This document shows, piece after piece, positions 13,325 through 63,800 of a stretch of 64,000 bases of DNA. Below the pieces are notes generated by a model. It saw nothing but the letters and a program-made list of their open reading frames with translations. It was not told the DNA's origin and did not search any database. Within the stretch, counting starts at the first letter, position 1, and each line of letters begins with the position of its first letter. Position numbers and translations under genes: made by a program. The DNA is from Raja brachyura (lineage: Eukaryota), in the NCBI GenBank assembly GCA_963514005.1, contig OY740799.1, forward strand, positions 11,036,001 to 11,100,000, written 5' to 3'.

Positions 13325-15280
13325 GGAGGCATGGAGTAAATGAGGTGCTAGATGAGTATAAAGAATGTAAAAAGAATCTTAAGAAATAAATAAGAAAAGC
13401 TAAAAGAAGATATGAGGTTGCTTTGGCAAGAAAGGTGAAAGTAAATCCAAAGGGTTTCTACAGCTATATTAATAGCAACAGGATAACGAGGGATAAAATT
13501 GGACCATTAGAGAGCCAGAATGGACCGCTATCTGCAGAGCCAAAAGAGATGGGGGAGATATTGAACAATTTCTTTTCTTCGGTATTCACCAAGGAGAAGG
13601 ATATTGAACTCTGTGAGGTAAGGGAAAAAAGTAGAGTAGCTATGGAAACTATGAGATTCAAAGAGGAGGAAGTACTGACACTTTTGAAAAATATAGAAGT
13701 GGTTAAGTCTCCAGGTCCTGACAGGATATTCCCAAGGACATTGAGGGAAGTTAGTGTAGAAATAGCAGGGGCTATGACAGAAATATTTCAGATGTCATTA
13801 GAAATGGGAATAGTGCCGGAGGATTGGCATACTGCGCATGTTGTTCCATTGTTTAAAAAGGGTTCAAAGAATAAACCTAGCAATTATAGACCTGTTAGTT
13901 TGACGTCAGTGGTGGGCAAATTAATGGAAAGGATACTTAGAGATAATATATATCAGCATCTGGATAAACAGGGTTTGATCAAGAACAGTCAACATGGATT
14001 TGTGCCTGGAAGGTCATGTTTGACAAACCTTCTTGAATTTTTTGAAGAGGTTACTAGGGAAATTGATGAGGGTAAAGCAGTGGATGTTGTCTATATGGAT
14101 TTCAGTAAGGCATTTGACAAGGATCCCCATGGAAGGTTGGTTAAGAAGGTTCAATCTTTGGGTGTTAATGGCAGAGTAGCAAGATGGATTCAACAGTGGC
14201 TGAATGGGAGATGCCAGAGAGTAATGGTGGATAGCTGTTTGTCAGGTTGGAAGCTTGTGACGAGTGGGGTGCCTCAGGGATCTGTGTTGGGTCCACTGTT
14301 GTTTGTCATGTACATCAATGATCTAGATGATGGGGTGGAAAATTGGATAAGTAAGTATGCAGATGATACTAAGATAGGGGGTGCTGTGGATAATGAAGTA
14401 GATTTTCAAAGTCTACAGAGAGATTTGGGCCATTTGGAAGAGTGGGCTGAAAGATGGCAGATGGAGTTTAATGCTGATAAGTGTGAGGTGCTACATCTTG
14501 GCAGAACAAATCAAAATAGGACGTACATAGTAAATGGTAGGGAATTGAGGAATGCTGTTGAACAGAGGGATCTAGGAATAACTGTGCATAGTTCCCTGAA
14601 GGTGGAATCGCATGTAGATAGGGTGGTAAAGAAAGCTTTTGGTGTGCTGGCCTTTATAAATCAGAGCATTGAATATAGGAGTAGGGAAGTAATGTTAAAA
14701 TTGTGCAAGGCATTGGTAAGACCAATTCTGGAGTATGGTGTACAATTTTGGTCGCCTAATTATAGGAAGGATGTCAACAAAATAGAGAGAGTACAGAGGA
14801 GATTTACTAGAATGTTGCCTGGGTTCCAGCAACAAAGTTACAGAGAAAGGTTGAACAAGTTAGGTCTTTATTCTTTGGAGCGCAGAAGGTTAAGGGGGGG
14901 GGGGGACTTGATTGAGGTCTTTAAAATGATGAAAGGGATAGACAGAGTTGATGTGGATAAGCTTTTCCCATTAAGGGTAGGAAAGATTCAAACAAGAGGG
15001 CATGACATGATAATTAAGGGACAGAAGTTTAGGGGTAACATGAGGGGGAACTTCTTTACTCAGAAAGTGGTGGCTGTGTGGAATGATCTTCCTGCAGAAG
15101 TGGTGGAGGCAGGATCGATTTTAACATTTAAAAGTAAAGTGGATAGGTATATGGACGGGAAGGGAATGGAGGGGTATGGTCTGAGTGCAGGTAGATGGGA
15201 CTAGGGGAAAATAAATGGTCGGCACGGACTGGAAGGGCCGAGAAAGCCTGTTTCCGTGCTGTAATTGTTATATGGTTAAC
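13325..15280 (+). mobile_element. CR1-clade LINE, 5'-truncated, uninterrupted RT ORF 13423-15204
   Basis: RT motifs [29 protein letters not shown] and YADD, followed by a CR1-type 3' UTR. Confidence 0.95.
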
Positions 15281-17675: not shown

Positions 17676-19270
17676 CAGTGGCTTGCAAACGTTTTCATAC
17701 CCCTTGAACTTTTCCATGTTTTGTCACATTACAACCACAAACATAAATGTATTCTATTGGGATTTTATATGATAGACCAACACAACATGGCGCATAATTG
17801 TGAAGTGGAAGGAAAATTATACATGGTTTTTCACTTTTTTTTACAAATAAAAAACTGAAAAGTGTGGCTTGCAAAAGTATTCAGCCCCCTCTGATACCCC
17901 TAAATAATCCAGTGCAACCAATTGCCTTCAGAAGTCAACTAATTAGTAAATAGAGTCCACTTGTGTGTCATCTAATCTCAGTATGAATACAGCTGTTCTG
18001 TGAAGGCCTCAGAGGTTTGTTAGAGGACATTAGTGAACAAACAGCATCATGAAGCCCAGGGAACACACCAGACAGGTCAGGGATAAAGTTGTGGAGAAGT
18101 TTAAAGCAGGGTTAGGTTATTAAAAAAAATCCCAAGCTTTGAATATCTCACGGCGCACTGTTCAATCCATCATCCGAAAATGGAAAGAGTATGGCACAAC
18201 TGCAAACCTACCAAGACATGGTAGGTCCACCTAAACTTACAGGCCAGGCAAGGAGAGCATTGATCAGAGAAGCAGCCAAGAGGCCCATGGTAACTCTAGA
18301 GGAGCTGCAGAGATCCACAGCTCAGGTGGGAGAATCTGTCCACAGGACAACTATTAGTCGTGCACTCCACAAATCGGGCCTTTATGGAAGAGTGGCAAAA
18401 AGAAAGCCATTGTTGAACCAAAGCCATAAGAAGTCCCGTTTGCAGTTTGCCACAAGCCATGTGGGGGACACAGCAAACATGTGGAGGAAGGTGCTCTGGT
18501 CTGATGAGACCAAAATTGAAGTTTTTGGCCTAAATGCAAAACGCTATGTGTGGCAGAAAACTAACACTGCACATCACCCTGAACACACCATCCCCACTGT
18601 GAAACATGGTAGTGGCAGCATCATGCTGTGGGGATGCTTTTCTTCAGCAGGGACAGGGAAGCTGGTCAGAGTTGATGGGAAGATGGATGGAGCCAAATAC
18701 AGGGCAATCTTGGAAGAAAACCTGTTAGAGTCTGCAAAAGACTTGAGACTGGGGCAGAGGTTCACCTTCCAGCAGGACAATGACCCTAAACATACAGCCA
18801 GAGCTACAATGGAATGGTTTAGATCAAAGCATATTCATATGTTAGAATGGCCCAGTCAAAGCCCAGACCTAAATCCAATTGAGAATCTCTGGCAAGACTT
18901 GAAAATTGCTGTTCACAGATGCTCTCCATCCAATCTGACTGAGCTTGAGCTATTTTGCAAAGAAGAATGGGCTCTAGATGTGCAAAGCTGGTAGAGACAT
19001 ACCCCAAAAGACTTGCAGCTGTAATTGCAGCGAAAGGTGGTTCTACAAAGTATTGAGGGGGGCAGAATACTTTTGCACGCCACACTTTTCAGTTTTTTAT
19101 TTGTAATAAAATTTGGAAACCATGTATCATTATCCTTCCACTTCACAATTATGCACCACTTTGTGTTGGTCTATCACATAAAATCCCAATAAAATACATT
19201 TACGTTTGTGGTTGTAACGTGACAAAATGTGGAAAAGTTCAAGGGGTATGAAAACTTTTGCAAGCCACTG
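17676..19270 (+). mobile_element. Full-length Tc1/mariner DD34E transposon, Passport-like, inactivated
   Basis: TIRs of about 210 bp starting CAGTGGCTTGCAAA, with TA on both flanks. Transposase runs from ATG 18049 to TGA 19056 with WSDETK, FQQDND and SPDLNPIE (34 residues between D and E). It has a nonsense codon at about 18121 and two frameshifts, and is inserted inside an older CR1. Confidence 0.95.
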
Positions 19271-24325: not shown

Positions 24326-24629
24326 TTTTATAAACCTTTATTGAATCTTTTGAACCTGAGTTGCTACAAGTCCTAGTCCTCACATGTAGGTTCAATTAGA
24401 AAGTGTTGCTGCTTTACTCTGTTTTGGAAATCTCTAATTTTTGAAAACATAATGTGATCAGAAGAGCAATAAATAGCAATACTAACACAGAGAACAAATA
24501 ATCAGAACAATGACTTCATTTACTTAAAATAAAAGCAATAATTTAAAAAAAGATTAGAATTTATTTGACACCATTCATTTCTCAAGCCCTGTTCTTGAGG
24601 TCTTCCCAGCCAATTACCTTTGAAAGGTA

Positions 24630-24832
24630 TTAAAGAAGGAACTGCAGATGCTGGAGAATCGAGGGTTACACAAAAAGCTGGAGAAACTCAGCGGGTGCAG
24701 CATCATCAAAGGAGCGAAGGAGATAGGCGACGTTTCGGGTCGAGACCAGTCTGAAGAAGGGTCTCGACCCGAAACGTCGCCTATCTCCTTAGATGCTGCT
24801 GCACCCGCTGAGTTTCTCCAGCTTTTTGTGTA
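24630..24832. mobile_element. Penelope-derived inverted short insertion with hammerhead core
   Basis: Inverted pair of the common repeat. CTGAAGA-AGGGTCTCGACCC-GAAACGTC lies at 24751-24778. Flanking duplication acctttgaaaggta. Confidence 0.7.
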
Positions 24833-25779
24833 ACCTTTGAAAGGTAGTTACCATTGGGAATATTTGTGCACAGAATGATTTCATTAAACAAAGGACAGGC
24901 CAAAAGGTCTAGTTTAGCAGTAAATGCTGGCCGGGAATCCACATTCATCTTCACTTCTGAAGAAGGGTTTTGACCCGAAATGTTGCCTATTTTCTCCGCT
25001 CCACAGGTTCTGCCTCACCCACTGAGTTTCTCCAGCATTTTTGTCTACTTTCATCTTCACATATATTTGGATAGGGTCTTCAACATTACATTCTGCAAAA
25101 GATTGGATGGCTTTGGTATAAATCTCATCCTTATGTATCAGTCTGGATCTTGTTCTCAAGACTCAGCCATCTTAGAACTAACCGCCTGCCCTGCTGGTAA
25201 GAAATGACTAAAATCACTGCAAAATTAAGCCTCGCATTTGCCTAAAGGAGATTTAGTGAAGCTCGATTGTCAACTTCTGATTAAATTGCCTCACAGTGCG
25301 GATGTGAATGGTGAGAGAAATTAAGGTAGGCCACTCAGAAGCTGCTTAAATCTTTAAAATAAAGATTTGGAAAAAAAATAATAGTAAATTGATATGTGAT
25401 AATCAAGTATATTTACCTAATCTGACCCCATACCTATTGGGAAGGAATTTTCAATATTACAAATATTAATGGACAAGAAATATTTCTACCATCTGAGGTA
25501 GCATTCAACTAATGGTATCATTAGAAAAATGGTCTGATTATTTAAAGTATAAAGGCTGTCTATGATTTGCTTTTGTCTCACATGATTTGCTTTTCAGCAG
25601 AAACCTCCTCCCAGTTATTGCAAGCAAGATGATCTGACCAGCAGAGAGAGAGAGAGAGTGAGAGAAAAAAGCTCTAAAAAATTACAATTCCAATTGGAAA
25701 GCACACGGGCTGAGGGAGGGACAGGTCCTTCCTGAGGGTCCCTCCCTCTGCTGTGCTGAAGATGAGGAGAGCCAGCTCT

Positions 25780-28700
25780 TCATTTCTTCAGCTTTTCACT
25801 GACTTGGTCAATCGCTTCCTTGATCCTGTTTAAAAACAAAGGAGTGATTACAATGCCGATCGTGGACAGGGGGATAGCACAGTAAAAAAAGTTTTGGAAA
25901 ACATCGAACACAATCTACATTGTACAATCTACAGAGGTAAAGATCTATTACAATTTTGACGGCTCCTATCCAAGACAAGAGGCCGAGATGAACAATTTCA
26001 ACCAATGTTTGATTCAAGGTGACAAAGTGGAGAGACTTATTTTGGACAAAAATAAGTCAGTACATTTAATGCTTTTCAATACTTTCAAATTGAATGACAA
26101 TACTTTCGTGATTATATTACCAGCACTTTCCTTAATTTTCTGACTTGCAATGGCCCTGAACTGATGACTAAAAGGAGGCTTTGATTGTGCTGAATCAATG
26201 GCTGTAAACTATCCCCCTGCTTCAAAAAGACAAGACTGGACAAAGTTAGCCTGCTGCTAATTCAGATTCGAAGGCTGATTTTGATGATTATTTCAAGTTT
26301 GACAAAGGCTATTGCTGTTTTTACTCTAGGTAACCCAACCCAACTCATGATATCCCTGTTGAATATTTGTATTGTGGAACTTAGCCCCATTACTCTAAGT
26401 AAATAGACCTGATCAGTTTAATTACATAAAATAGCATCCATTACTCTAAGTGGCACAGAAACATACTACCATGCTGTTTAGTTTAGTTTAAAGATACAGC
26501 ATGGAAACAGGCCCTTCACCCCATGGAGTCCAAACCTACAATCAATCACCCGCTCACACTAATTCCATGTCACCCCACCTTCACACCCATGCTTACACAC
26601 TAGGGGCAATTTACAAAGGCAAATTAACCTACACACCTGCATGAGTTTGGGATGTGGGAGGAAACTAGAGCACTTGGAGGAAGCCAAAGCGACCACAGGG
26701 AGAACATACAGAATATACACATTGCACTGCCCAGCTCACTACTTTTCCATCAGGCTTTCTGTTTAAGGGATCAATGATCTGTTCAGAGTTAATTCCACAT
26801 GTTATTTGCTTCGATTGCTTGAGCAAAGAGAGAGAGTTGGGTATTACTGTACCGTGTCAGTGGGATCTGCTCCACACATAAATTGACGAAGGGACTCAAC
26901 TGGTGAAGAGCATATTCATACTGTAACAACAAAGCACAACATTGGACGATCCCACATTTTCTCACATTAACCCAATCTTTGGCCATGCACACCCTTTTTT
27001 TGCCTCTTTGTGTCGCCCTTATGTCATCCTCACAACTCACTTTCCTACCCATCATTATGTAACGTACTGTAACAATATACATCAGAACAATTATTTACAG
27101 TGCCCAGACTGGTGCAGACGGATTCCTCTTTTCCACACCATTCACAACCATGAAATAATCCAAAATCCTCAGCTTTGAGTCAAAACATCTCTCACTATAC
27201 CTCCTACCCCTCACCTCAACCACTTTCTTATGTTCTCCATGCTGAGATGGGCACTGGAACAACACAAAGCAACACCCAGGCGCCTACTCTTCTCCAGGGC
27301 CAAAACCCTATGCTTTGTGCAACATTTCAGACTGTTAGAGTTGTATAGCACAGAAAAGGTCCTTTGACCCACCCATCCAATTCCGATCGTCAATCCCACA
27401 CTGCACACTGTCTTACAGCGCCAAGATCCTGACTATGGGCACTGTCTGTATAGAGCTTGTGTGTTCTCCCTGTGACCGTGTGGGTTTTCTCTGGGTGCTC
27501 CAGTTTCCTCCGACATTCCAAGGACTTGCAGGTTTGTTGGTTAATTGGCTTCTGTAACTTGTCCCTATTGTGTGGGATAGAACTAGTGTACAGGAGATTG
27601 GTTGCTGGCACTAAACTCGGTGGGCCGCAGGGCCCGTTTCCCTACTCTATCTCTAAACTAAACTAAACTTGTCCTCCCAGTTTCCATCACTCACCTGCAC
27701 ACTAGAAGCATTTTTTACAGCGGCTACCAACCAGCATGTCTTTGGGACGCAAGAGAAACCCTGAATATTCAGGGGGAAGAAACCCAGGCAGTGACAGGGA
27801 GAACGTGCAAGCTCCACACATTCAGTCCCAGAGATCAGGATTGAAACCCAATCGCTGGAACTGTGAGGCAGCAACATAGCTAACTGCACCACCGTACTGC
27901 CCCTATTAAATCTGGCTCTTCTTGTGGTCATTGGTTTCAGTTAAGAAGCTGCTCAATGCTGCATCGAGCTGTTTTATCAGCGCTGTGAAAAGCAGCAGAG
28001 TTCCCACCCAGTCTTCTTCTTGTCGTGTCGCTGCACTTTTCCAAGCCACTGCACAACGCAGGCTCTGGCACATGGGTTGAAGACCCTGAGATCTTCTGGT
28101 TTGCAGGTTTCTGGGAGGTGGGGGCAAGTACCCTGCCTCTCTCCCCTCCTTAAAGCTAACATGTTGACCCAGCTTTTGATCACCTACGCTGGTATATTTT
28201 CTCTTTGGCCTAATATTGATTTGACAATGGTCGCATGAACTCACCATTGCAGCTATCTCTGTACTATGTGAATGCATCACAGACGTACCTCTGGATTATG
28301 CCAGTCAAAGCACCGCATTTGGAAATACTCCACCGCAGAGCGGTAGTTTCCCCGCTCCGTGAGGCGCTTCTTGCCGGTGAGCACTCGCTCAGCCTGTTCT
28401 TCGGAGTCCGTGGCCAGAGTAACAATCTCTCGCACTGTCTGTCGGATTAGCTCCCTCACCTGCAACACAACAGAGCTGTTTGGTTACACCCCGACCACAT
28501 GGGAAGGACCCATGTCATGTATCTGTACACTGGAAATAGGGCTCTAGATAGGGTTCCTAAAAATAGCGGAGTCAGGGCATATGGGGAGAAGGCAGGAACG
28601 GGGTACTGATTGGGTATGATCAGCCATGATCACATTGAATGGTGGTGCTGGCTCGAAGGGCCGAATGGCCTACTCCGGCACCTATTGTCTATAAATGGCG

Positions 28701-29164
28701 CAATTTACATAATCACGTATTGTCTTTCCGCTGACTAGATAGCACGCCACAAATGCTTTTCACTGGACCTCGGTTCACGTGACAATAAACAAAACTATAA
28801 ACAAAGACTGGGAATCCATCATTTTACTGCCCGTCCTGGGAACAATGAAGAATTCCCTGGAGCAGGAGCCCCATTTGACAGCAGGACTACCAGTGTGTGT
28901 CTCCCTGCACTGTAGGCAGGTTAGTGAGGCTGTCTGCCCCACACTGACTAGCACCATCCAACATCTCTTTGCTGGTTCCAGATGAGTAAAGATGCCTGGT
29001 ATGGGGCCCAGGGTAGAGGAACAAGTTTGCACCATTACCTCAAGGAGATGGTCCAAGTCTTTCTGCAGCTTTTCCTTCTCCTCTGGATCCTTAGCAGCTT
29101 TGATCCTATTCTCAAGAAGAGTAACAGGTGCGTCACACTGTGCCACAGTCTCCATTCCAGCCAT
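25780..29164 (-). CDS. Legumain-like gene encoding only the C-terminal activation peptide/LSAM prodomain, 136 aa, 4 coding exons
   Basis: Exons: 29164-29039 (acceptor at 29184), 28459-28289 (171 nt), 26920-26853 (68 nt), 25825-25780. Introns are GT-AG with phases 0,0,2. Sequence RCFDWHNPEYEYALHQLSPFVNLCVEQIPLTRIKEAIDQV aligns with the legumain C-terminus [40 protein letters not shown]. Confidence 0.8.
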
Positions 29165-30499
29165 TAGAGTGGGTTTGCCCGCGCCTGCAGCAGGAAGCAA
29201 CATGGGAACACTGTAGTTCTCACAAAGAAACAAAGCTCTCCAATCCTAAGGGAGCAGCACAGAGAGTCTGAGCACCTCAAGGAGCAGGAATCAATATTTA
29301 TCATCAGGATTCTCCTAATCAGTGACAAACATGAAGACATTCCGGACAGTCAGGGGCTTTTACAGTTTATTCTCATGCATATCATTTCATGAGCTCAGAA
29401 AGACCTCGAGAACTGAAGACGGGTCTCGGCCCGAAACGTCACCCATTCCTTTTCTCGAGAGATGCTGCCTGCCCCGCTGAGTTACTCCAGCATTTTGTGT
29501 CTTATTTCCGAGATCTACACGGCTGGTGAAACACTGCGATGCAGAATGGTTGTTGTGTTGTCGGGACTATGGTAGTGTATTTGCTTCCTGGTAACCACCA
29601 GATAACTGAGCCGTGAATCAAATCAAAAAAAGGTCGGCAGATTGTCACCGTCTCGTCAAAAGGCACGTTGGGGGATTTTGCATCGACGCCACCGCATGGA
29701 ACGTGACAATCTTGTGACCTGACAGATATCTCACGGCGCGGGAAGGAGGGCGCCAGTGGCATTTCTGCCGGATACACACAAAATGCTGGAGTAACTCAGC
29801 GGGACAGGCAGCATCTCTGGAGAGAAGGAATGGGTGACGCTTCTTCAGACTGAAGTCAGGGGAGAGGGAGATACATAGATAAGGAAGTGTACGATGTGAA
29901 GAGGAGATGTTGATCAAGGAATTCTGTCAGAGTTTCCGCTACAGGCTTTTCCCAAACTGAACACGAGGGGGCAAAACCTGACCAGAGGCTGAAGAAAGGT
30001 CTCGACCGAGATGATCGTGTGTCTGTGCCCTCCACTGGGGGAGGCTGCCCGACCCACTGAGTCCTCCAGCACTTTGTATCTTCCTCCTTGACTCCTCGTC
30101 CCCCTCGCCCTCCACTGTCTAATTCCCTAATCCCATCAACCTCCATGATCATCAACATCCCAGCTATTATATTTACCAATTTAATCATTTCCTTCCCAGG
30201 AGAAAACATCTTTAATGTAGGAACTGCAGATGCTGGTTTACACATAAAATAGACACAAAATGCTGGAGTAGCTCAGCGGGACAGGCAGCATCTCTGGCGA
30301 CGCTTCGAGTCGAGACCCTTCTTCAAACATCTTTTAATTGGATATATAACTTTGAATTTGTTACATTGATGATATTTCTTTCCACTTTCAACTTTATAAA
30401 GTGATTTACAATAATCCACGGTCAATTTCAAAAAACAAATCGTACATATTCAGATACAGAGGATGGGGGAGGGATACCCCAAATGTGAACTGAACTCAC

Positions 30500-30640
30500 C
30501 GAGTGCAAGCCTTCCCTGCAAGCTTCCACTCCGCGCTTCCTGGGAGCAGCCTTGTCCGCGCTAGGGGAAGCTCCGCCCGGCTCACGCTGCGCCTCGTCTA
30601 TAGGACGGGCTGTGGCCGCTCCCTGGTGACTCACAGAGGC
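30500..30640 (-). promoter_or_regulatory. Putative promoter and non-coding exon 1 of the LSAM-only gene
   Basis: CpG-rich patch with AP-1 site TGACTCA (30627-30633), TATA-like ctatag (30598-30603) and GC box (30573-30578). Strong donor CG|gtgagt at 30500/30499. No ATG in the exon. Confidence 0.55.
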
Positions 30641-31529
30641 GGTGTCATCTCACCAGCCTCCCCTCTGTCAGCTGACGGGACAGCAATGGAGACCAAAGAT
30701 ACTAGAGCAAGAGAGACGCTCCACGTCCAACACGTTGGTGCAATCTAAGCGTGTAGGAAGGAACTGCAGATGCTGGTTTAAACCGAAGTAAAGCTGGAGT
30801 AACTCAGCGGGACAGGCAGCATCGTCTTCAGTCTAAAGAAGGGTCTCGATCCGAAACGTCACCCATTCCTTCTCTCCAGGGATGCTGCCTGTCCCGCTGG
30901 GTTATTCCACCATTTTGTGTCTATCTTTGGTGCATTCTGAGCAACAGGTTCAAGATCAGTGACAGCACAACTGACCACAGACGCGCTCACTTTAATTCAC
31001 CTTCCCTGATCAACATAACGTCCGATAGAAGGATCCCAAACCAAAACGTCGCCTCCACAGACGCTGCCTGGCTCGCTGACTTTAGTTACTCCAGTACTTT
31101 TTGCTCCAGATTCCAGCATTTGCAGTCTTTTGATTCTCCCTCTAATAGATTTTATAACTGAGACTCCACATTAAATGAAAACAGAAAATGCCGTAAATAC
31201 TCAGCGGGCCGGGCAGTATCTGCAGTTCTGAGGGTCATAGCACAGTGACAGGCCCTTCGGCCCAACTTGTCCATGCCGACCAAGGTGCCCCATATGCATT
31301 AATCCCACCTGCCTGCATTGGCCCAGATCCCTCTAAACATGTCCTATCCATGATACATCCACACATGTATTTTAAATGTTGCCAATGGTTCTTGCCTCAA
31401 ACTACCCCACCTGGTGGTTCTTTTCCACCACCCTGTGTGAAAAAGGTGCCCCTCAGGTTCCTATTAAATGTTTCCCGTCTCACCTTAAACATAATTCCCC
31501 CATTCTAGTAAAAGACTGTGCATTCACAG

Positions 31530-32552
31530 GCAGTGGCGAGTGGAGTGCTGCAAGGCTCGGTGTTGGGGCCGCAACTGTTTACCATATATATTATGATTTG
31601 GAAGAGGGATTTAGGAGCAAGTTTGTGGATGACACAAAGCTGGGTGGCAGTCTGAACTGTGAAGAGGATGTTAGGAGGTTGCAGGGTGACCTGGACAGGT
31701 TGAGTGAGTGGGCAGATGCGTGGCAGATGCAGTATAATATAGATAAATGTGAGGTTATCCACTTTGGCGGCAAAAACAAGGGGGCAGATTATTATCTCAA
31801 TGCGGTTAGGTTAGGGAAGGTGGAGGTGCAGCGAGACCTGGGCGTCCTTATACACCAGTCACTGAAAGTTGGCTTACAGGTACAGCAGGCAGTGAAGAAA
31901 GCTACTGGAATGTTGGCCTTCATCACAAGAGGATTTCAATATAGGAGTAAAGAGATTCTTCTGCAGTTGTATAGGGCTCTGGTGAGACCACATTTTGAGT
32001 ATTGTGTACAGTTTTGGTCTCCTAATTTGAGGAACGACATCCTTGTGATTGAGGCAGGGCAGCGTAAGTTCATGAGTTTGATCCCTGGGATGGCGGGACT
32101 GTCTTATGAGGAAAGATTGAAAAGACTAGGCTTGTATTCACTGGAGTTTAGAAGGATGAGGGGATATCTTATAGAAACATATAAAATTATAAAAGGACTG
32201 GACAAGCTAGATGCAGGAAAAATGTTCCCAATGTTGGCCGAGTCCAGATCCAGGGGCCACAGTCTTAGAATAAAGGGGAGGTCATTTAAAACTGAGGTGA
32301 GAAGAAACATCTTCACCCAGAGAGTTGTGAATTTATGGAATTCCCTGCCACAGAGGGCAATGGAGGCCAAGTCACTGGATGGATTTAAGAGAGCGTTAGA
32401 TAGAGCTCTAGGGGCTAGTTGAGTCAAGGGATATGGGGAGAAGGCAGGCACGGGTTATTGATAGGGACGATCAGCCATGATCACAATGAATGACGGTGCT
32501 GGCTCGAAGGGCAGAATGGCCTCCTCCTGCACATATTTTCTATGTTTCTATC
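31530..32552 (+). mobile_element. CR1-clade LINE 3' fragment
   Basis: FVDDTKLGG...LEFRRMRG in ORF 31376-32422, with a 3' UTR and ttctatgtttcta tail. Confidence 0.9.
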
Positions 32553-36731: not shown

Positions 36732-37116
36732 TTAAGGAAGTTGTTTCAGAGGAAGTGGCGCAGGGGTATGGAGCAGCAACCCATTCTCCTTGTCTGGAAT
36801 ATCAATCATTGTCACTTTGTTGTTCTGAAGATATTTGTTAATATTTGCTTTTATCTTTCCTATCCTTACCCGAGTGTCTAGATCAGGTATGGTACTCTCA
36901 TCTCCCAGGTCTTTCAGAATGGATTTCAATAGTTTGCGCAGCCACTTTGTGCCGTAACTCTGCTCATGGGAGGGAAGCATTTGAACCTGACTTTCAACTC
37001 GGAGTAAGAGCTCTTCATCATCTCTGATCTTAGTGATGATCTTTAGCCCGTGACACAGCTTTTCAACTTGTTGAATGTTTTTCTGTTCAAGGTCATCAAG
37101 TTTGTTTGCACATAGA
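36732..37116 (-). CDS. Terminal exon: last LRR plus helical C-terminal cap
   Basis: Acceptor ttgctttcag|T completes TAT (Y). It reads YLCANKLDDLEQKNI... through to TAA at 36734-36732. Confidence 0.8.
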
Positions 37117-40100
37117 CTGAAAGCAACAAGGCAATGAAAATTAGCAAATGCTTCAATCGTATTTAAATCAGGAATCCGAAAATCAAATTCCAACCATCTC
37201 ATTCACGTTATCTTAATAATCATCAAATTCTACAATGAGGAAGTGGCCATTCAGCATCATAACTGTCCAGCCCTTTAGGGAGCTTTCCACTTGCTCACTC
37301 CTTCTACTCTTTCTCGTATCCGTGCAAATGTTTCTTCTTCAAATATTATTACTCCCATTTGAAAATTTGAACAAAAGTTCCCTTATATCCTAATTTTCTT
37401 TGACCTTCTAAACTATTTACTCATCTAAACTATTTCCAAACCTACATCTCGTTTCTTTTTTTTATGACCCAATTAAGGATGTGCCTGGTTCCTTCCGAAA
37501 AGCGTAATCTTTACCAGCTAATCTTAGTACAATGCTAATGGTGATTCAGCCACAGTCTTGAGTTAGAATGCACTCTCAATCCTTGCTCCTTTCCTGCCAC
37601 TCCATCACACTGAAACAAAAACATATGGACATGTCTGGAGCAGCAATGTTCCTTGCGTGGTAGAGGGTCCCATGGAGGCTGGGAAAGAAAAAAAAGACTG
37701 ACTCAGCGGGTCAGTCAGCATCCCTGGAGAACATGGATAGTCGGGACCCTTCTTCAGTTTAATTAGTCTGAATTGATCAATCAGATTAATCAAACTTGCA
37801 GGTCGGTACACTTCTTCAGACTAATCAGTTTGACCAAAGGGTCTTATCCCAAAACGTCACCTATCCATGTTATCCAGGAATGCTGCCTGACCCGCTGCAT
37901 TACTCCAGCTTTTTGTGTCTTTCCCTGGTAAACTAGCATCTGCCGTGCCTTGTTTCTATATTTTCACATTTACATAATGTGTCTCATACTCACCAACGCC
38001 AACACAATTGCACACAAACCAATCCTTGTGAGCATTTATCAAATAAACTGCTTATTCACTCACATCTACCAGCTACTTACTAGAGCTTCTGGAGAGTTTT
38101 GTTGCATTTCAGGTACTGAGTCATGTTCTCTGTGCCTTCACCTGTGATCCCATTGTCATACAGGCGAAGGATTTTGAGACTTCTGTTTCTTGCCAGAGCT
38201 TTCCAAAGAATCTGAGCTCCCGCCGAACGTAAAGAGTTTGTGCCACTCCTGAAAACGGAACCAAATGGCAAATGTCAGGGATGAGAAGCTCTATAGAAAC
38301 TTGGAGAATTTTACAAGAGGATCTATGTGATGAAAATTCTTACGATAATGTCTCAATCCTGCACTTTGGGTCTTCAAGGACGGCACTTAAATTCTTTGCT
38401 GACTTCGGAGTCAGTTTGTTGGAGCTTACCCTGGAAACACAAAACGTTGAAATCAATTAGAGACCCGAGTGCCTGGGGACAGAACACAAGCCTCACAAAC
38501 TGCTGCCTGCAAATTAACAGTTGCGCCCCTGCCAGGAGAGCAGAGTCTAACCTTGGTCTAACGCGTGTGTCTGTGCAAAGATTTTTGAACAATAGTGCAA
38601 ATGGGGCTTAAAATGACCAGATAATTACATAGTTTAAGAGATCCTGTGCTTCTGCTTGAGCAGTTTCTAATACACAAAATCAATTCAACCTCGTTTATAA
38701 TAATCAATGTTTGGATATTTGGATACACAAGAGACAGCAAAAGCTGGAACCTGGAGCAAAAACAAACTGGCGGAGGAACTCAGCGGGACAAGCAGCATCG
38801 GTGTAGGCAGACAGACAGTCGATGTTTGCAGTCGAGGATTGAGAGCAGAAAGGGGATATGGCCAGGACAGAAGTGAGTGGGAGACCGAGAGGCAGGATCT
38901 GGCAAATGATAGGTAGAAACAAGGAACTGATTTACACAAAAGAACACAAAATGCTGTAGTAACTCAGCGGGTCAGGCAGCATCTCTGGAGAACGTAACAG
39001 GTGATATTTCTTCTTCAAACTGATGATCAGTCTGTAGTGAGGTCCCGACCTGAAACGTCAGTGATCCGTGTTCTCCAGAGATGCTGCCTGACCCGCTGAG
39101 TTGCCCCAGCACTTTGTGTCCTTAAGTAATAGGTGGATCCAGATGAGGAGTGCTGAGATGAACCTGAAGCTGAGGAGGTGATAATGGATACAAAGGACTG
39201 TAGATTATGGAATCAGGTAAGAAATGATAATGGTGAGTGGAATCACATTAGGGTGGGATGGTGGGCAAAAGCTGGGCAGTGGAGGGAATTGGGAAATCAA
39301 GTGGGTGTAATGTGCAAGTGATACACTGATGGAATCATTTGGGAAGGGGTAGGGTGATTACAGAAACTGAGAGTAAGAGGGGTTGGGTTTGAAAAGAAGG
39401 GGCATGTGAGACAACCTAGGTGTATCAGGAGACAACAAATAGACAGAGGGGTTACGTGAATTTGATGTTCATACCATTAGGTTGTAGACCACCCAGGTGA
39501 GATAGGAGATGCTGTTCCTCTAGATTCATGAAAACCTGTCCATTGACACTGCTGTGCTGGAAATGGGGTGGGGCAAGATTTACAGAAAGAACAAACCCCC
39601 AACAGGTATATTTGCAGGTAAAGCAAACCGTCCCCAAGTCTTTTTATCGTGATCAATGCAAGTGTGCTCATAAGAGCAACAACTAGAATGAATGCATAGA
39701 ATTAAATCTCTGCCCTTGTGGTTATTACAATGCAGCTCTGTGACTCATTGCCGCTCTGTGGCTCTACATGGCAACATTGGAGGAGGGTAGGGTTATGATA
39801 GAACAATGTAGGTAAGAGATGATTGCACAAATTGTTTCCATTCTAGCCTTGAAGAGTAGCATCTCCATTTGCATATATTTCATTACAACTTTCAGGCACA
39901 AATATTAGCTGGGATAGAATAAATCAGGACATGCAGGGCATAAAATGTGACAAAGGAAAGTATAAAACATGCCGACAAACATTGAGCATGCAAGAAGGTA
40001 GATTAGCTCAACTGGCACTTAATATTCTTTTGAATGTCATTACTCACAAAAGAGTTCTGCACTTGACTAGAATTTCTTGGAGCTGCTTTATTCCTTTATC

Positions 40101-43100
40101 ACCAATGTTACAGTGCCTCAAATCCATCTCCTCCACAGTGGAATGATTGAGACAGTAGCACAAAGCACGCAGATCGAGGGGGCTCAGAAAAAAGTTGTGA
40201 AAATCCACATGTCGGATGCAAGGAGATACTTCAGCCGTTACAGTGGCATCATTCAGTTCAAAGAGACAATGCATCAAATTCAGCAATTCTGCCTTCTTAA
40301 CGTCTCGCTGAAGGCTGTTTTTGAACCATGTTGTGAGAGCTCTGGCTGTAGAAGGGGGGAGAGGAGCTCTATAGTTCCACAACTTGCCATCTCTTCCTGC
40401 GGTTAGGAAGCCAGTGAGAAACCTCAGAAAATTGTACAGTTTCTCTGTGTGATCAGGTTGAAAAGATTGCAAATAAAATTGGCTCATTTGATTTAGTGGC
40501 CTTTTCCCAAAGCACCACAGATCCAGACACTTGACCAACTCTTCAGCTTCATGGTTGAGTAAAGTAGCACAATACAAAGCTGCAAATTGTTCCTTCAGCA
40601 CTGCATGGTGGAACGCAAAGACCCCTTGGCATTTACAGTCCAGCACAAGATTTGAGAGATATTTTGAAAGGATGTCTGGGTCTATTTCATAGGTCTTCAG
40701 ATCAGTCACATTTATTTCAAGTTTCCCTGATAGCAGAGAGTTGAAGGATAGTTCTCCCAGTTTCAGGATGGTGTCTTTAAACAATTCCTTCTCCTCTTCA
40801 CTCTTATTCTCAGCGTCTGTTTCTTTACACGTGCTGCAGTTAAACAGACTGTACAGCAACAATGTAAAAACTTTGCTATTTGTCACTGGTTCATTTGCAG
40901 GCACTTGTTGAGAGCTGGTACACTTGTCCAAAATATTGCACAGAATGAAGCTGTTGAGGGGATTGGAAGCCAGACATTTGATGGTCGCATTCTCTGTAAT
41001 GCGTTGAAACATTTCTTCTGCCTTTTGCTTCTCTCCACAAAACACCTCACAATATCTTTTCAGCTGATCATTGGTAAAGCCAGATATAACAAAAAGCTGA
41101 TCAAAGTAGTTCTTGCTGAATTCTATCTGATTGGTATTCCATCGGGAGGTAACCAACACCTGGGCTTCTCGAAGGAGGTTCTTGGATATTAGTTTGGAAA
41201 CAAGAACACCTACTTCTGCCTCACTATCCAGGTTGAAATCAGAGCCAGATGGATTCCATTGCAACTGATGGGCAAATTCATCAAGCCCGTCCAAAATGAT
41301 CAACACATCTTGAGGGTTCAAGAGGAGTTCCGTTAGGACTGATGACAAAGGTGTGCAATGCTTCTTGAGCAGATCCCGGAGAGATGTCTTTCCTTTAACC
41401 TCATTCAAGTCACGGAATCTGAGAACCAAGACACTCCTCAAGGTGTGGGTTGGTTGAGATGCCCACTCTTGCTCCATGCTGACAACAGTCCAACTTTTCC
41501 CTACTCCTGCATCACCTACCAGCAGGACTCGCTTTGAGAAATTTCCTTCCTGAAGCAAAGACAGCAGTTGTGAAATTTGTACTTCTTGTGCAACATTTGA
41601 GTCATCACTCCTGATAAGATCACCGTCTGGGTCTTGTTCCTTCGGGTTGGTAATATTGATGGTTCTGGCAAGCGAATAGTTTGCGAATCGCTGTTGTGTT
41701 AATGAACAACATAAATGCATTTTATCTTTCAAGATGTACCCTTTATAGTTCTGAATGGCATCTGAAGAAAAAAATACATTTCTCACAATTAGTAAGTATT
41801 TTATTATCATGGATTAACAAAATGTGAGAACTGTGAGCATCAGATATCCATCAAGTGCAGATCCCCTTTAAGAATTCCCACATCGCTTCACGTTTAATTT
41901 GTCAGAGTTATGCAGCACAGAAACAGCCCCTTCAGCCCACCTTGTCCATGCCAATCATCAAGTAACCATCCATACTATTCCATTTGCCAACTGTTGGTCA
42001 GTATGCCCTGCTGATACAAGTATTAAAATCTTGCAGATTTTCCATTCGTCATCTACACCAGCTTTTGGTTGGCACTTTGTTACAAAGTTCAAAATATCCA
42101 TATTATGAAAATATTTCACATAACAAAATCTGATGCAGTTTGAAAGTGAACCTGGGATTCCCGGGAGCGTGGGGATCCTCCAGAATGACGATCCTCCTGC
42201 CAGATAATACTCAATGGCTAGATTATGGTCTCCAGCATGCAACTCCATTGTAGAATGGATCCATGATTAGGGAGACCACTTCTACTATTGTGGGCAGAAA
42301 CTACTGCATGCTGGAGCATAACTTAAGAAAATCTCAATGGAGGTTGGTTCTTTACCTTTTATATTGTCTGCCAGTAAATGAATATCTGGAAAAATAAATA
42401 GAATAAACCACATGTTAGAGTGTGTTCCTCTCAAAGAATGTCATATACACTGTGGCTCAAAGCGCCTAGAAATCCTTTCCCATTGGAGTGTTCTGAACAC
42501 ATTCTCGAATAGGTATTCAGTTTGTGTGATTATTGGACAAAATCTTAAACATTTTACTCACTCTCTTCATTATCTGGTTTCTTCTTGTTTTTCATTTTCC
42601 AAAACAAAATTCCAACTGCAATTAAAACAGGCAGCACTGCAAGTAGGAGTACAAGCTTGTGCCTTTCCGAAGCTGGATCGGTGCCACTGGGTGTATTATT
42701 CTCCGATGTATCTATGATGTTCAGAACACAAAAGTGCAAATGGTTAGTGTTCAATTAAGAATTGGGCTAAAACACGCTTTCAAATCAAGGTTTACTATAA
42801 TGTCATTAATTTTATAATTAACATTTGGGAGCAGGATTGATAAAATCTGATTGACCCTTTTATTGCAAGTATAAGTCTTCTATTTTGAATACAACTTTTT
42901 AGAAGCAACAAGTGCTAACACGATACAAACCTGTCACAAATGACTATGACCACAATCCCCAGATCAACAGTGCTGCTATGTGCGTTCACATGGGCTAAGC
43001 TATGCCGGGCTTTTTGTGGGATATAGGGAGCTGTCACTGTTTTGGGGGCAACTCTGGCACATCCCTCAACTCTTCTTCTGGTACATCGACGATTCTATCA

Positions 43101-45983
43101 GTGCTGCTTCGTGCACTCAGGCACAACTCAAATGCCTTCCTTTTTGCTTCCAATTTCCAGCATCTGACTCTCCCCTTCTCCTTCTGGATCTCTGTTATCA
43201 GTTCAGGGGATTGGTGAGCGACAAACTGACATTACAGGCTGAAGAGAAAGATCTCGATCCGAAACATCACCTATTCCTTTTCTCCAGAGAACCCACTCAG
43301 TTGCTCCAGCTTTTTGTCTATCTTCGGTTTAAACCAGCATCTTCAGTTCCTTCCTACACAACAAGAGTTCCCTTGATCTTTCCTTCTACCCAGTTGCCTC
43401 TCTGTTCAATGGATCATCTTTGCAAATTCCAACAGCTCCAATAAGACTTGACCACCAAACATATATTTTCCTCTGCATAGGAAAGAACTGCAGATGCTGG
43501 TTTAAATGGAAGATAGACGTAAAATGCTGGAGTAACTCAGCAGGACATGCAGCATCTCTGGAGAGAAGGAATGTGTGACGTTTCGGGTCGAGACCCTTTT
43601 TCAGACCGATTTCCTCTCCTCCCTTTTCAGCATTTTGAAGGAATCACTCTGTTTGAGTGCAGGCAGAGGGCAGTTATTTTAACTGACATTGTTGGCGTGG
43701 ACATTACGGGCCGAATGACTGCGAGAGTTGGAACGTCATGTTGGAGCTGTACTAAACACTGCTTACACTGCATTTGGAACACTGAGTGCAGTTCTAGTTG
43801 GCACGTTACAGAAAGTGTTATTGTAAAAGCATTCACATGATATTCAGCTGCATGTCGCCCAAAATAGTGGAATGTAATTATAATGAGAAATTGGAAAGGC
43901 TGGATTTTCACTCACTGGAATGCCAGATGACAGGGTACTCTGTCTCTACCAGTTTAAATGGGATATCAATGGGATATAGTCAGAGTCTTTTTCCACAGGG
44001 AGCCAGAACTAGAGGCACAGATTTCATGGGGACGCAAGTTGTGACAGACGCTGGAATCTGGGTCAAAATACAAGAGAAACTCGACATCTACGGAGGGAAA
44101 TGGACAGATAAGATTGCGGGTCGAGACTAAGCCCAAGTTCAGGGTGAGACTTTTAAAAGAGATCTGATGCAAAAGTTTTCACACTGGACGATAATACCTG
44201 GGATGAGCTTCCAGAGGAGGTAGTAGAGCAGGGGTGGGCAACCTTGTTCTGCATCGGTGCTGGGACGCATGTCTGTGAGCGGATGGCGGGCCACATCTAT
44301 CACGTGTTCACATGGATCCCACCCCCATCCCATCCCGGATGGCAAGCATCAGATCACGTGTTCACAGAAGTTAGACAAAATGCTGGCGAAACTCAGCGGG
44401 TGAGGCAGCCTCATGCAATCCTACATGTCTCACCTGCTGAGTTTCTCCAGCATTTTTATCTCCCTTTGATTTTTCCAGCAGCTGCAGTTCTTTTTTAAAC
44501 GTGTTCACAGAATGTGCGCGGCCGTGCCGGCGGCTTTGCGCAGGATGCGGTACAGCCAGAGCTGAGCCGCTCTTGGCACTCGGAGGGCCGGATGATTTCA
44601 GGTTAGGAGCCACATTCGGCCCGGGGGCTGTAGGTTGCCGACCCCTGTTGTAGAGGGTGATACTATGACATTGTTCGATAGACATTTGGAAAGGTACGTG
44701 GATGGGAAAGACACAGAATGATACTGGTCTAATGCATTCAAATGGGATTGGCAGAGACTGGCATTGGCATGAGATGGCCAAAAGATTCCCTTTCTGTGCT
44801 TTACAATTCTGTGAAATTTACACAACAAAACATCGATCAATCTGTCACAAGATGCACTCACCATTTAATTTTAGTTCCACCACGTTCTCTGTGAATGGCA
44901 TTCCATCATCCACAGTTACAAAGCAAGTGTAGTTTCCCACATCCGATAACAACATTCTTTCCAATTTCAGGCTCGCATTCCCTTTGGAGAATTCCGATTG
45001 AAATAGTTGAGTGCGGCCCAGGAATGCTGTGTCGTGATGCTCCGGATGGGCTGATCCAGAATAGAAACTGTAAACCACGGCGAGACTGTCTGTCCGCTGC
45101 CATGTGATGATGAGATTGTTCAGATTGAAGTTGGATGAAGCATGGAAGGTGCAGGGCAGCCAGATGTCTTTATTCAACATCCCATAGGATCGAGAGAAAG
45201 ACCCTTCAGCTGGGAAATACAGGAAATGAAAACGCATGCGTTAACTTGCACATAAAGTTGGAGTCATCTACCTCCAAACTTCCTGTGCTCCAACCGAATA
45301 TCACTCAGTTCAGTTTAGTTTATTGGCACGTGCACTGAGGTACAGTGAAAACCTTTTGTTGCATGCTATCCAGTCAGTAGAAAGACAATACATGAGAACA
45401 ATTGAACCATACAATGTACAGTTTATTTACAGTGTATTATAGTACAGTACAAGGGAATAACGTTTAGTGCAAGGTAAAGCCAGCAAAGTACGAACAAGGA
45501 AAGTCTGAAGGTCACCAAAGAGGTAGATAGTAGTTCAGCACTGCTCTCTGGCTGTGGTACGCTATAGCTTCCAGCATGCCACAAATCCAATCCACTGACA
45601 TGTTTCCACATCTACTGACTCTATCACACTTTACAAGATATTACTTTAGTTACAAAATGAAATGAACGGATAAAAGGAATGTTAGAATTGAAATTAAGGT
45701 AAAAGCAGGAGAATAATGTCACCGCAATAGGCAAATAAGCAATGAAAGAAAAATTGTGTGAGAATCTTTGTTATATTGTTGAGCAAAGGGTTTACTCTTC
45801 AATCTTAAATTAGGCAATGAATAAAACAGGAAACGTAATTCCTCTAAGATCAGATTCATAACTTGTGAGAAGCAGCCAGCGAGTGGATGACAAATGTACA
45901 CAATCTCCCCATTGGGATGAACACTCACCCAAGCTAGGGAACAGCAGCAATGACAACAGCATCTTTTCCAATGTACACTCCAT
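36732..45983 (-). CDS. Predicted type I transmembrane NLR: signal peptide - IgV (B7-like) - TM - NACHT - LRR, 978 aa, 8 coding exons
   Basis: Exons: 45983-45929, 45209-44862, 42711-42562, 42385-42356, 41761-40048, 38430-38344, 38248-38081, 37116-36732. All introns are GT-AG and phases match (1,1,1,1,2,2,2). The total is 2937 nt = 978 aa + stop, with no internal stop. Confidence 0.8.
38081..38248 (-). CDS. 168-nt LRR exon (two RI-type repeats)
   Basis: SGTNSLRSAGAQILWKALARNRSLKILRLYDNGITGEGTENMTQYLKCNKTLQKL; phase 2-2, ttttcag / gtaagt. Confidence 0.9.
38344..38430 (-). CDS. 87-nt LRR exon
   Basis: VSSNKLTPKSAKNLSAVLEDPKCRIETL; phase 2-2, tttccag / gtaaga. Not in the ORF track. Confidence 0.85.
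40048..41761 (-). CDS. NACHT-HD1-WH-HD2 exon with first LRRs (NLR family)
   Basis: Walker A GDAGVGKS, Walker B LIILDGLDE, sensor-1 VLVTSR, NPL motif, WH motif FAFHHAVLKEQFAALY and HD2 motif LLNLMHCLFEL. Acceptor ttttcttcag; phase-2 donor TT|gtgagt. Confidence 0.95.
42356..42385 (-). CDS. 30-nt juxtamembrane micro-exon (NIHLLADNIK)
   Basis: Acceptor tatttatttttccag, donor AAG|gtaaag. Phase 1-1, so it keeps frame between the TM and NACHT exons. Confidence 0.65.
42562..42711 (-). CDS. Stalk plus transmembrane exon
   Basis: 150-nt phase 1-1 exon. Hydrophobic LVLLLAVLPVLIAVGILFW is followed by a basic stop-transfer segment KMKNKKK. Acceptor catcatag, donor gtgagt. Confidence 0.85.
44229..44647. 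mobile_element. hAT (Charlie-like) MITE with nested Penelope insertion
   Basis: TIRs CAGGGGTGGGCAACCT / AGGTTGCCGACCCCTG; 8-bp TSD tagtagag / ttgtagag. Confidence 0.85.
44862..45209 (-). CDS. Ig V-set domain exon, B7/butyrophilin-like
   Basis: 348-nt phase 1-1 exon. It carries canonical IgV motifs WLPCTF, IITWQR, GRTQLF and GNASLKL...DVGNYTC. Acceptor ttcccag, donor gtgagt. Confidence 0.9.
45929..45983 (-). CDS. Signal-peptide exon of Ig-TM-NLR gene
   Basis: Acceptor tcttcaag|GCA ATG, peptide MECTLEKMLLSLLLFPSL, phase-1 donor G|gtgagt. Splicing gives ...FPSLAEG, a plausible A-x-G cleavage site. Confidence 0.8.
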
Positions 45984-62859: not shown

Positions 62860-63800
62860 TTAGAATAAGGATATAAGTGGCTTGTTGTAGAACCTCTGAA
62901 AAGTCGATTCATTTGACCATCCTGCGGCCGCGAGGATGTGGTCTAGAGGGACGTCCATTGCCCTCACCACTGACGTCGACGCTGCCCTGGTGGAATGAGA
63001 TTTAACGTTTTCAGTATTAACTCCCGCACATCCCAGGACTTGCTTCAGCCATCGTGAGATGGTCTGAGATGACACTTGCTTATGTGGCTTTTTGTGGCTT
63101 ATAAGTAGTGCTACCTCAGACCCTCTGAGGCTCTTCGTAACATCAATATAATGCTTCAAATGCTCCACTACACGCAGGCGTGAATCTGCTGGATAAGCTG
63201 ACAATACAAGCTTGAATCCTGACACCCCTGGTCTGCTCTGTTTGAGTAAGTCATAGACGTAAAAAGTAACGGCATTTTGTGATGACACCATCCAGTCCAG
63301 ATGCAGTTTGTTGAGAGTCTGAACCCTCTGCGCTGATGTAAGCACCATGATCATGACCAATTTGAGGGTGATCCTTAGTAAGGACAATGATGAGGCTGTT
63401 CCCCATTGACGGAGCACCATGAGTACCATGCTCACATCCCAGATTTGAGAGTACCTAGGCCCAGGAGGATTGGAATTAAACACACCCTTCATGAATCTTG
63501 ATATTAACAGGTGGGACCCTAAAGGTGGAGATCTGACCCTCGACACAAGTATGCTGACAGGGCACTCCTGGCACTGTTGATGGCACTGTAACTCAGCCCT
63601 TCACTGGATAGGAATTCTAGCACATCTGGGATGGAGACCGTGTGATGTGATGTTCCCATGTAAGCAAAATTCCTCCCATTTCCTGATATGGGAGAGGTAT
63701 TGCCTTTTTGTGCTATCCCTCCAGGATGATGTGATGGTATCCACAGTCTGATTGGACAGGCCCAGGTACGGCCTTTTAAAAATCTGCAAATCAACAAATT
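62860..63800 (-). mobile_element. DIRS-type retrotransposon tyrosine recombinase fragment
   Basis: Catalytic motifs SAQRV, KSHSTRAASTS and AAGWSNESTFQRFY in ORF 62860-63546. Frameshifted N-terminal part GLSYSAINSARSALS. Confidence 0.85.

Follow-up and report, generated by a model that had tools for sequence, protein, structure and literature searches.

A stand-alone gene for the C-terminal module of legumain in cartilaginous and ray-finned fishes

We analysed a stretch of 64,000 nucleotides from Raja brachyura (GenBank assembly GCA_963514005.1, contig OY740799.1, positions 11,036,001 to 11,100,000 of the forward strand), which is called the window below and is numbered from its first letter. 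The minus strand of the window carries a small gene whose protein is homologous to the final 15 residues of the activation peptide of legumain plus the LSAM domain. To our knowledge, the LSAM domain has been known only as part of the legumain zymogen. Our analysis makes us almost certain that this is a stand-alone, intact, expressed and anciently conserved gene for the C-terminal module of legumain only.

Gene structure

The gene has four coding exons and a 3' untranslated region (UTR), arranged as follows:

29184-29039 (146 nt), minus strand: coding exon A, frame open from the acceptor, with ATGs at 29164 and 29155; corresponds to the end portion of the activation peptide of legumain (helix) and to the start of LSAM
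28459-28289 (171 nt, 57 codons), minus strand: coding exon B, the core of the LSAM domain
26920-26853 (68 nt, phase 2 at its end), minus strand: coding exon C
25825-25780, minus strand: coding exon D, the last exon up to and including its stop TGA (25782-25780)
25779-24974 at least, minus strand: 3' UTR, cut short where the contigs run into a repeat; the next AATAAA further downstream lies at 24565

All acceptors of exons A to D are AG and all donors are GT, and the product has 136 amino acids (aa) from ATG 29164 or 133 aa from ATG 29155. A preliminary description of the locus, made from the sequence alone, had given these exon sizes, phases and start codons, and our coordinates agree with it throughout. 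It had further proposed that the protein has no signal peptide; the N-terminus from exon A is indeed polar, with no signal peptide as judged by eye, and the exon upstream of it carries in-frame stops (see below).

Several copies of one short interspersed repeat, in both orientations, were observed in the introns and UTRs of the gene:

About 30751-30900, 30240-30330, 29776-29860, 29440-29510, 28579-28692, 25040-24960 and 24700-24840: repeat copies

At these copies, the summed depths of assembled sequence contigs rise to 1e5-1e6, and most contigs break or falsely join there. As a consequence, neither end of the transcript is fixed.

Transcripts and the first exon

In order to follow splicing, assembled Logan contigs from runs of four related organisms (X1, X2, X3 and X6, with X1 the closest relative) were placed on 25200-31100; such contigs show structure, not transcript ends or expression levels. 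Record 9 of X2 (1545 nt, depth 82.7) was found on 25200-25824, 28289-28457, 29037-29181 and 30499-30818. The same contig has 69 unlisted letters at the place of exon C, where the bin depth of 29 equals 82.7 x 69/197, as expected, and the exon C bin depth equals contig depth x 69/197 in X2, X3 and X6 alike. The same D-C-B-A joins were present in a contig of X3 (1292 nt, depth 40.2) and in one of X6 (773 nt, depth 13), and are thus seen in three organisms. Record 7 of X1 (572 nt, depth 94.6) gave the B-A join, with exon B joined to 29037-29442. The 3' UTR length given above is based on record 9 of X2 and record 14 of X3, which both lie on 25200-25824, plus 226 letters past 25200.

Spliced contigs had depths of 13-95, compared with 3-13 for intron-only pieces in the same runs. 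Since the intron-only pieces are this shallow, the runs behave as RNA, a point on which their records are silent. Many further Logan contigs of about 1.1-1.4 kb encode complete short proteins of 136 aa or 142 aa, and they must come from spliced RNA, since the gene spans more than 5 kb. No contig linked exon A to other coding sequence, with 97 letters at the end of the X6 contig unplaced; likewise, transcripts joining these exons to catalytic exons of legumain, which the preliminary description had envisaged as a possible outcome, were absent among the contigs of the four relatives.

The X2 contig also defines a non-coding first exon, together with features inside and next to it:

30818-30500 at least, minus strand: non-coding first exon (5' UTR), donor G/GT at 30500/30499, from the X2 contig
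30648-30631, minus strand: upstream open reading frame (ORF) of five codons, within the part of the first exon that X2 record 9 covers
30563-30561, minus strand: in-frame TAG nearest the donor, closing the frame that feeds exon A
29442-29185, minus strand: alternative 5' extension or retained intron, where the X1 contig reads through the exon A acceptor

The first exon measures at least 320 nt, and the contig ends at 30818 inside a highly repeated element. The predicted junction from 30500 to 29184 was present in the contig of one organism (X2), with partial signs in two more; in X1, depth was 0 at 30519-30715, and no first exon showed at 30.5 kb. Base composition is distinctive, with a GC content of 0.66 and an observed/expected CpG ratio of 0.79 at 30500-30650 against 0.45 for 25-31 kb. 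A CpG-rich, ATG-free 5' exon had been postulated earlier: it is CpG-rich and is spliced to exon A in X2, and the statement on ATGs needs correcting for the five-codon upstream ORF. The AP-1 and TATA-like motifs at about 30600-30632, which had been taken for a promoter, fall inside the transcribed exon in X2, which reaches 30818 at least, and that reading gains no support. The frame feeding exon A meets three in-frame stops in the first exon, which exclude a longer protein running through this exon. The read-through form of X1 (29185-29442), whose in-frame ATG at 29203 would lengthen the protein by 13 residues, may represent an alternative start with a second promoter, or a retained intron.

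Homology and predicted fold

Exon B alone matched the human legumain chain 4fgu_A (chain residues 330-384) with an E value of 2e-7 in a sequence search of the PDB, and it also matched hamster and mouse legumain; canonical legumains in turn matched exon B at E 1e-10 to 1e-14 by tblastn. Single exons are too weak in Pfam to decide the matter, with 13.7 bits for exon B against Legum_prodom (cut-off 25.2) and no legumain match for exons A and C singly, and the PDB search on exon B is decisive.

We then found no sign of the protease domain in the window. When three full-length canonical legumains (gar, 438 aa; tarpon, 436 aa; and a lamprey-labelled protein, 449 aa) were compared with the whole 64 kb by tblastn, only exons B and C matched, the best other E value being 0.33, and two partial legumains, which together hold positions 1-77 and 159-257 of the Peptidase_C13 profile, likewise revealed no catalytic exon in the window. 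The interval between the gene and an NLR gene upstream contains a LINE-like (long interspersed element-like) ORF and other repeats, and no legumain exon. The preliminary description had reported no catalytic-domain exons as far as the NLR gene, and had expected full legumain to give only C-terminal hits; tblastn bears this out for the entire window. As to missing assembly sequence, which had been named as a possible objection, the window contains zero N.

The window exons were handled singly, and the natural orthologue P0057 stood in for the whole protein. P0057 has 136 aa, shares a 90%-identity cluster with the skate proteins of RefSeq, and showed per-exon tblastn identities to the window of 95%, 92% and 88%, with 29164-29036 aligned at 95%. 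It scored 34.3 bits against PF20985 Legum_prodom (cut-off 25.2), covering profile positions 2-96 of 97. Among five proteins of the short family to which it belongs, four passed this cut-off and P0048 fell below it with 23.2 bits; Peptidase_C13 (PF01650) was absent in all five, and present in both canonical controls.

AlphaFold2 modelling of P0057 (26-sequence alignment) gave a pLDDT of 87.6 and a pTM of 0.79, with seven helices and only residues 1-9 disordered. All seven Foldseek matches with E<=0.001 were mouse, human or hamster prolegumain (TMq 0.65-0.82, root-mean-square deviation 1.7-2.0 over 122-125 columns); plant legumains came next, and the first unrelated row had an E value of 2.5. 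In the VIA wide search of 48,161 chains, the proenzyme of a plant legumain was the one clear match (Z 11.5), and a search of the ESM Atlas with P0057 gave no usable match. Death, CARD, pyrin and DED proteins appeared neither among the 50 VIA matches listed nor among Foldseek matches with E<1, a comparison made with the whole P0057 model including its long N-terminal helix, not with the LSAM core alone. The check by AlphaFold and Foldseek that had been proposed for this locus was thus answered by an orthologue model that superposes on prolegumain prodomains with a TM of 0.82, and P0057 is predicted to have the fold of the legumain prodomain, that is, of LSAM as in the prolegumain crystals.

Family distribution and phylogeny

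To investigate the distribution of such proteins, exon B was compared by phmmer with 1.84 billion representative sequences without a length limit, which gave 32 matches. Reading 21 of these and typing them by eye, we obtained 7 of short type and 14 of canonical type. The short-type matches have 96-223 aa, no Cys at the first disulfide position and a common T-D-S-x-E motif; the canonical-type matches are fragments of canonical legumains. A profile built from 4 clean members, in a search that sees lengths of roughly 80-255 aa only, then matched 35 proteins, all 35 of them short fish proteins (86-223 aa); those with precomputed Pfam records have Legum_prodom only, bar one reverse-transcriptase tail.

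This short family occurs in skates (Leucoraja, Amblyraja), in sharks (Chiloscyllium, Hemiscyllium, Stegostoma, Rhincodon, Pristiophorus) and in ray-finned fishes (sturgeons, gar, bonefish, tarpons, milkfish, a sucker, characiforms and catfishes), so that the orthologues in other chondrichthyans looked for on the advice of the preliminary description do exist. The sources name the proteins 'legumain-like', 'legumain' or 'Legumain prodomain domain-containing protein'. RefSeq proteins called 'legumain-like' have 133-196 aa (136 aa for the Leucoraja and Amblyraja models), and entries called 'isoform X1' are short as well (153, 165 and 181 aa). A full-length canonical legumain lies on a separate contig in Albula, Megalops cyprinoides, Chanos, Astyanax and Acnodon.

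The tree inferred with IQ-TREE (mixture model, 133 columns) contains 25 short proteins together with 19 canonical legumains, the latter represented by their prodomain parts. The 25 were taken from the 35 profile matches; P0010 was dropped as an isoform of P0035, P0038, P0050, P0053 and P0062 as longer hypothetical models, and P0001, P0014, P0018, P0064 and P0065 as partial or mispredicted, and P0063, which has an internal gap, was kept in the 26-sequence alignment and left out of the tree. The canonical side consists of ray-finned legumains, as no canonical shark or tetrapod legumain was found among the best 120 of 2,320 matches. The short and canonical groups form the two sides of one branch (support 100/100; length 1.1, as 0.67+0.43). 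Within the short clade, cartilaginous fishes stand apart from ray-finned fishes (100/99), and the order of gar, sturgeon, elopomorphs, milkfish, sucker, and characins with catfishes matches the species tree. The tree is unrooted, has no outgroup and carries no inferred root. P0119 (Lampetra planeri label, 37-kb contig) was tried as an outgroup and rejected, for it nests with medaka and fugu among the teleosts (100/98); it appears to be a fish sequence within a lamprey assembly, or else to be wrongly labelled, and was excluded from the charge and column counts below.

The simplest reading of the tree is that the truncated gene would have originated once, before the split of cartilaginous and bony fishes, and this agrees with the shared derived characters of the short family. 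A partial duplication of recent or local date does not fit, since the orthologues in sharks and many ray-finned fishes fall into one clade.

Amblyraja radiata has two RefSeq 'legumain-like' entries, P0186 and P0187, on different contigs (104.9 and 44.0 Mb), and this pair points to a putative second copy or a haplotig. The N-terminus of P0187 (196 aa) is extended by the translated sequence of an exon homologous to the first exon in the window. This extension is probably an annotation artefact, an over-extended model, because the homologous exon in the window carries stops.

Residue changes and sequence constraint

Columns of known importance in legumain were counted in 18 canonical and 25 short-family proteins:

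Autocleavage Asn column: canonical N 18/18; short N 0/25 (K 21, G 2, E 1, R 1)
Cys 1: canonical C 18/18; short C 0/25
Cys 2: canonical C 18/18; short C 19/25
Cys 3: canonical C 18/18; short C 12/25
Cys 4: canonical C 18/18; short C 0/25
First Arg of the double-arginine motif: canonical R 18/18; short R 20, K 5
Second Arg of the double-arginine motif: canonical R 18/18; short R 1, K 1, else H, Q, D

The window exons have K, N, C, C, S, R and H at the autocleavage column, Cys 1 to Cys 4, the first Arg and the second Arg, in this order. Given a pairing of LSAM cysteines 1-3 and 2-4, which we take to hold, neither LSAM disulfide could form in the short family. The autocleavage column is presumably human N323, on the basis of its motif and of the numbering, and the double-arginine columns are presumably human R342 and R403, the motif needed for carboxypeptidase activity. 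The residue names N323, D303/309, R342 and R403 occur in PMC9788469 and PMC8491156, N323 in the former and the double-arginine motif in the latter. Other features are kept in the short family: the helix at the end of the activation peptide, D-V-P...L (D 25/25, V 22/25, L 24/25), and the F-N/D-W-H motif. Alignments further reveal a derived Lys-rich C-terminal helix, which is common to the short family and is unseen in canonical legumains.

We next compared sequence identities. For ten same-species pairs, the median identity was 57% for the short family and 68% for the canonical prodomain (LSAM). Cartilaginous and ray-finned short proteins share a median identity of 43% (100 pairs), and short and canonical proteins share 30%. 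Sequence free of selection would not keep such identity over that span. The ORF is intact in the window and in all 25 aligned species. At the nucleotide level, X2 differs from the window at 8/314 positions of the coding exons and 47/945 of the UTRs, and X6 at 17/318 of the coding exons and 9/290 of the 3' UTR. Among the differences listed in sense codons, those at 28400 and 29135 are synonymous and that at 28374 is nonsynonymous (216 more lie beyond those listed); the difference at 25781 turns the stop TGA into TAA.

Proposed function and alternatives

Our leading reading, put forward tentatively, is that the short protein would act on legumain in trans, as an uncleavable prodomain. At neutral pH, LSAM gives stability to the catalytic domain, and it remains non-covalently bound after cleavage (PMC9788469 and PMC8491156); the encoded module, in legumain, covers the active site and neutralises the acidic surface (PMC9788469, PMC8491156 and PMC7489914). 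We favour action in trans because the encoded module is the part that covers the active site and stays bound after cleavage. The protein would stay in the cytosol or nucleus, a compartment suggested by the loss of Cys 1 and Cys 4 in 25/25 short members, with all four Cys present in 18/18 canonical legumains. Its docking site on the catalytic domain of legumain would be the active-site face, as for the attached prodomain in the zymogen and the two-chain state. With the autocleavage Asn replaced, legumain could not cut the protein off, which could then cap or stabilise legumain outside the acidic lysosome. A more specific proposal, which we consider doubtful, is that cartilaginous and early-branching ray-finned fishes would possess a dedicated cytosolic, uncleavable and C13-specific cap, one that catches escaped legumain or holds it as a neutral-pH-stable, carboxypeptidase- or ligase-like enzyme, and that this cap would have been lost in tetrapods and euteleosts.

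Several observations weigh against action in trans, or weaken the basis on which it stands. Legumain is luminal and the short protein has no signal peptide, so that the compartments do not match. According to PMC9788469, LSAM carries positive charge and neutralises the acidic catalytic domain, whereas the net charge of the aligned region has dropped to a median of 0 in the short family (-3 in the skate orthologue, isoelectric point 5.7) from +2 in canonical legumains (isoelectric point 8.4). Only 1/25 short members keep Arg at the second position of the double-arginine motif, and a helix Lys of canonical legumain is Gln in 23/25 of them. Three of the 26 aligned models (P0009, P0043 and P0045; Albula and two Megalops) have a hydrophobic N-terminal stretch of about 25-45 residues, which may be a signal peptide and would then make the protein secreted or luminal in these elopomorphs; because of these N-termini, the cytosolic reading may not fit the whole family. 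The short family was found in no tetrapod or euteleost in the searches made, and both groups keep legumain. Furthermore, the signals from nucleotide divergence are mixed between X2 and X6, and both Pfam membership and fold rest on P0057, about 95% identical, as a proxy for the window protein. For a trans-inhibitor, an idea already voiced in the preliminary description, the sequence evidence is accordingly mixed, with the helix and first Arg kept, the charge lowered and the second Arg lost.

Nearly as likely as a trans-prodomain is a role independent of legumain, in which the protein would be a neofunctionalised helical bundle that keeps the LSAM scaffold and has, in the cytosol or nucleus, a binding partner with no relation to legumain. 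This possibility, also tentative, would account for the loss of the disulfides, the autocleavage Asn and the second Arg, for the shift of charge towards neutral or acidic values and for the shared derived Lys-rich C-terminal helix, and it is consistent with the long branch (0.67+0.43) between the short and canonical groups and with a compartment unlike that of legumain. On the other hand, no candidate partner is known, and the end helix of the activation peptide, the first Arg and the F-N/D-W-H motif are as conserved as in canonical legumain, which a role of the fold alone would not demand, though the reasons may be structural only.

The neighbourhood of the gene suggested another possibility, an adaptor for the NLR gene upstream, whose features are as follows:

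36732-45983, minus strand: upstream NLR neighbour (ORFs and Pfam)
40044-41810, minus strand: NLR ORF with NACHT and NLRC4_HD2 (Pfam)
Near 38.1 kb, minus strand: ORFs resembling leucine-rich repeats (LRR)
42554-42754, minus strand: transmembrane-like ORF
44845-45237, minus strand: IgV-like ORF

It is very unlikely, in our judgement, that the short protein is a death-fold-like adaptor working with this Ig-NACHT-LRR gene. The gene does lie about 6 kb downstream of the last ORF of the NLR on the same strand, and LSAM is called 'death domain-like' in PMC8491156 and PMC7489914, with a topology of this kind also given in PMC12320161. Nevertheless, the death-fold proteins looked for were recovered neither by Foldseek at E<1 nor among the 50 VIA matches listed, the X2 contig gives the gene a first exon of its own with in-frame stops, and the short family turned up in fishes only.

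The remaining explanations carry very little weight. We give hardly any credence to a transcribed pseudogene fragment or non-coding RNA: the gene is a truncated copy of a larger one, the X1 contig reads through into the upstream intron, and the coding exons of X6 diverge from the window more than its 3' UTR, but against this stand the ORF intact in the window and 25 aligned species, the 43% identity between cartilaginous and ray-finned proteins, a clade topology like the species tree, a confident AlphaFold2 model, and many Logan contigs of about 1.3 kb that encode full 136-aa proteins. It is also extremely improbable that the exons form the 3' end of a longer gene, be it a legumain with catalytic exons outside the window or a read-through from the NLR; although the exon A frame is open from the acceptor and the 5' end of the first exon is not fixed, with the contig stopping in a repeat at 30818, the first exon has its three in-frame stops, the 35 kb upstream on the same strand contain no catalytic exon, 7/7 short-type matches have 96-223 aa in the search without a length limit, and RefSeq isoforms all have 133-196 aa.

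The rest of the window carries transposon ORFs at 13423-15204, 18191-18994, 49717-51710, 62860-63546 and 31376-32422, of several types: reverse transcriptases, a Tc1/mariner-type transposase (HTH_Tnp_Tc3_2 and DDE_3), a pair of endonuclease and reverse transcriptase, and a tyrosine-recombinase ORF. The LINE-like ORF between the prodomain gene and the NLR gene has no Pfam match.

Relation to known systems

The closest known system is the canonical legumain prodomain (PF20985; PDB 4fgu, 4nok), which is homologous in sequence and has the same fold as the P0057 model. The boundaries of exon B appear to be shared with canonical legumain, whose truncated predictions start and stop at these same residues. 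Canonical legumain has Peptidase_C13, a signal peptide, two disulfides, the autocleavage Asn and the second Arg of the double-arginine motif, features that the short family is without, and it ends in a Cys-containing tail, in contrast to the extended Lys-rich helix at the C-terminus of the short family. In the two-chain, asparaginyl carboxypeptidase (ACP) state of legumain, the bound LSAM piece resembles the encoded module, from the end helix of the activation peptide through the end of LSAM; the short module comes from its own gene and, to judge from its sequence, would act in another compartment.

By analogy, the short family may be likened to the propeptide-like inhibitors of MEROPS family I29 (CTLA-2 alpha, Drosophila crammer, Bombyx BCPI), which offer both a stand-alone proregion gene and a logic of action in trans. 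These are described as stand-alone proregions acting on a protease in trans in PMC4089206. They derive from propeptides of the papain family (C1) and their inhibition has been measured, whereas the short family derives from a C13 prodomain and is known from sequence.

The gene itself is not new to the databases, where it already stands as predicted orthologues. XP_055509298.1 (Leucoraja erinacea), XP_032878285.1 (Amblyraja radiata) and XP_072418930.1 (Chiloscyllium punctatum) are the same gene, with 133-136 aa and the same start and end. The RefSeq skate entries cluster with P0057 at 90% identity, the Leucoraja and Amblyraja proteins are not identical to that of the window, and the RefSeq and UniProt names come from the annotation pipeline only. 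Our literature search, with subscription journals and supplements outside its scope, found no paper on a stand-alone legumain prodomain gene or a C13 counterpart of the propeptide-like inhibitors.

Significance

In summary, the short family provides a natural, free-standing LSAM without disulfides or signal peptide, probably older than the split of cartilaginous and bony fishes. It makes testable whether a free LSAM regulates legumain in trans, or whether the fold has been put to another role. Recombinant LSAM is offered as a tool for the study of function in a 2025 protocol, in which the two disulfides are named as the obstacle to production (PMC12320161); in practical terms, the family gives legumain biochemists a cysteine-poor LSAM that should express easily. 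If action in trans is true, this would be the first C13 counterpart of the papain-family propeptide-like inhibitors, and a class of protease regulator not described for legumain.

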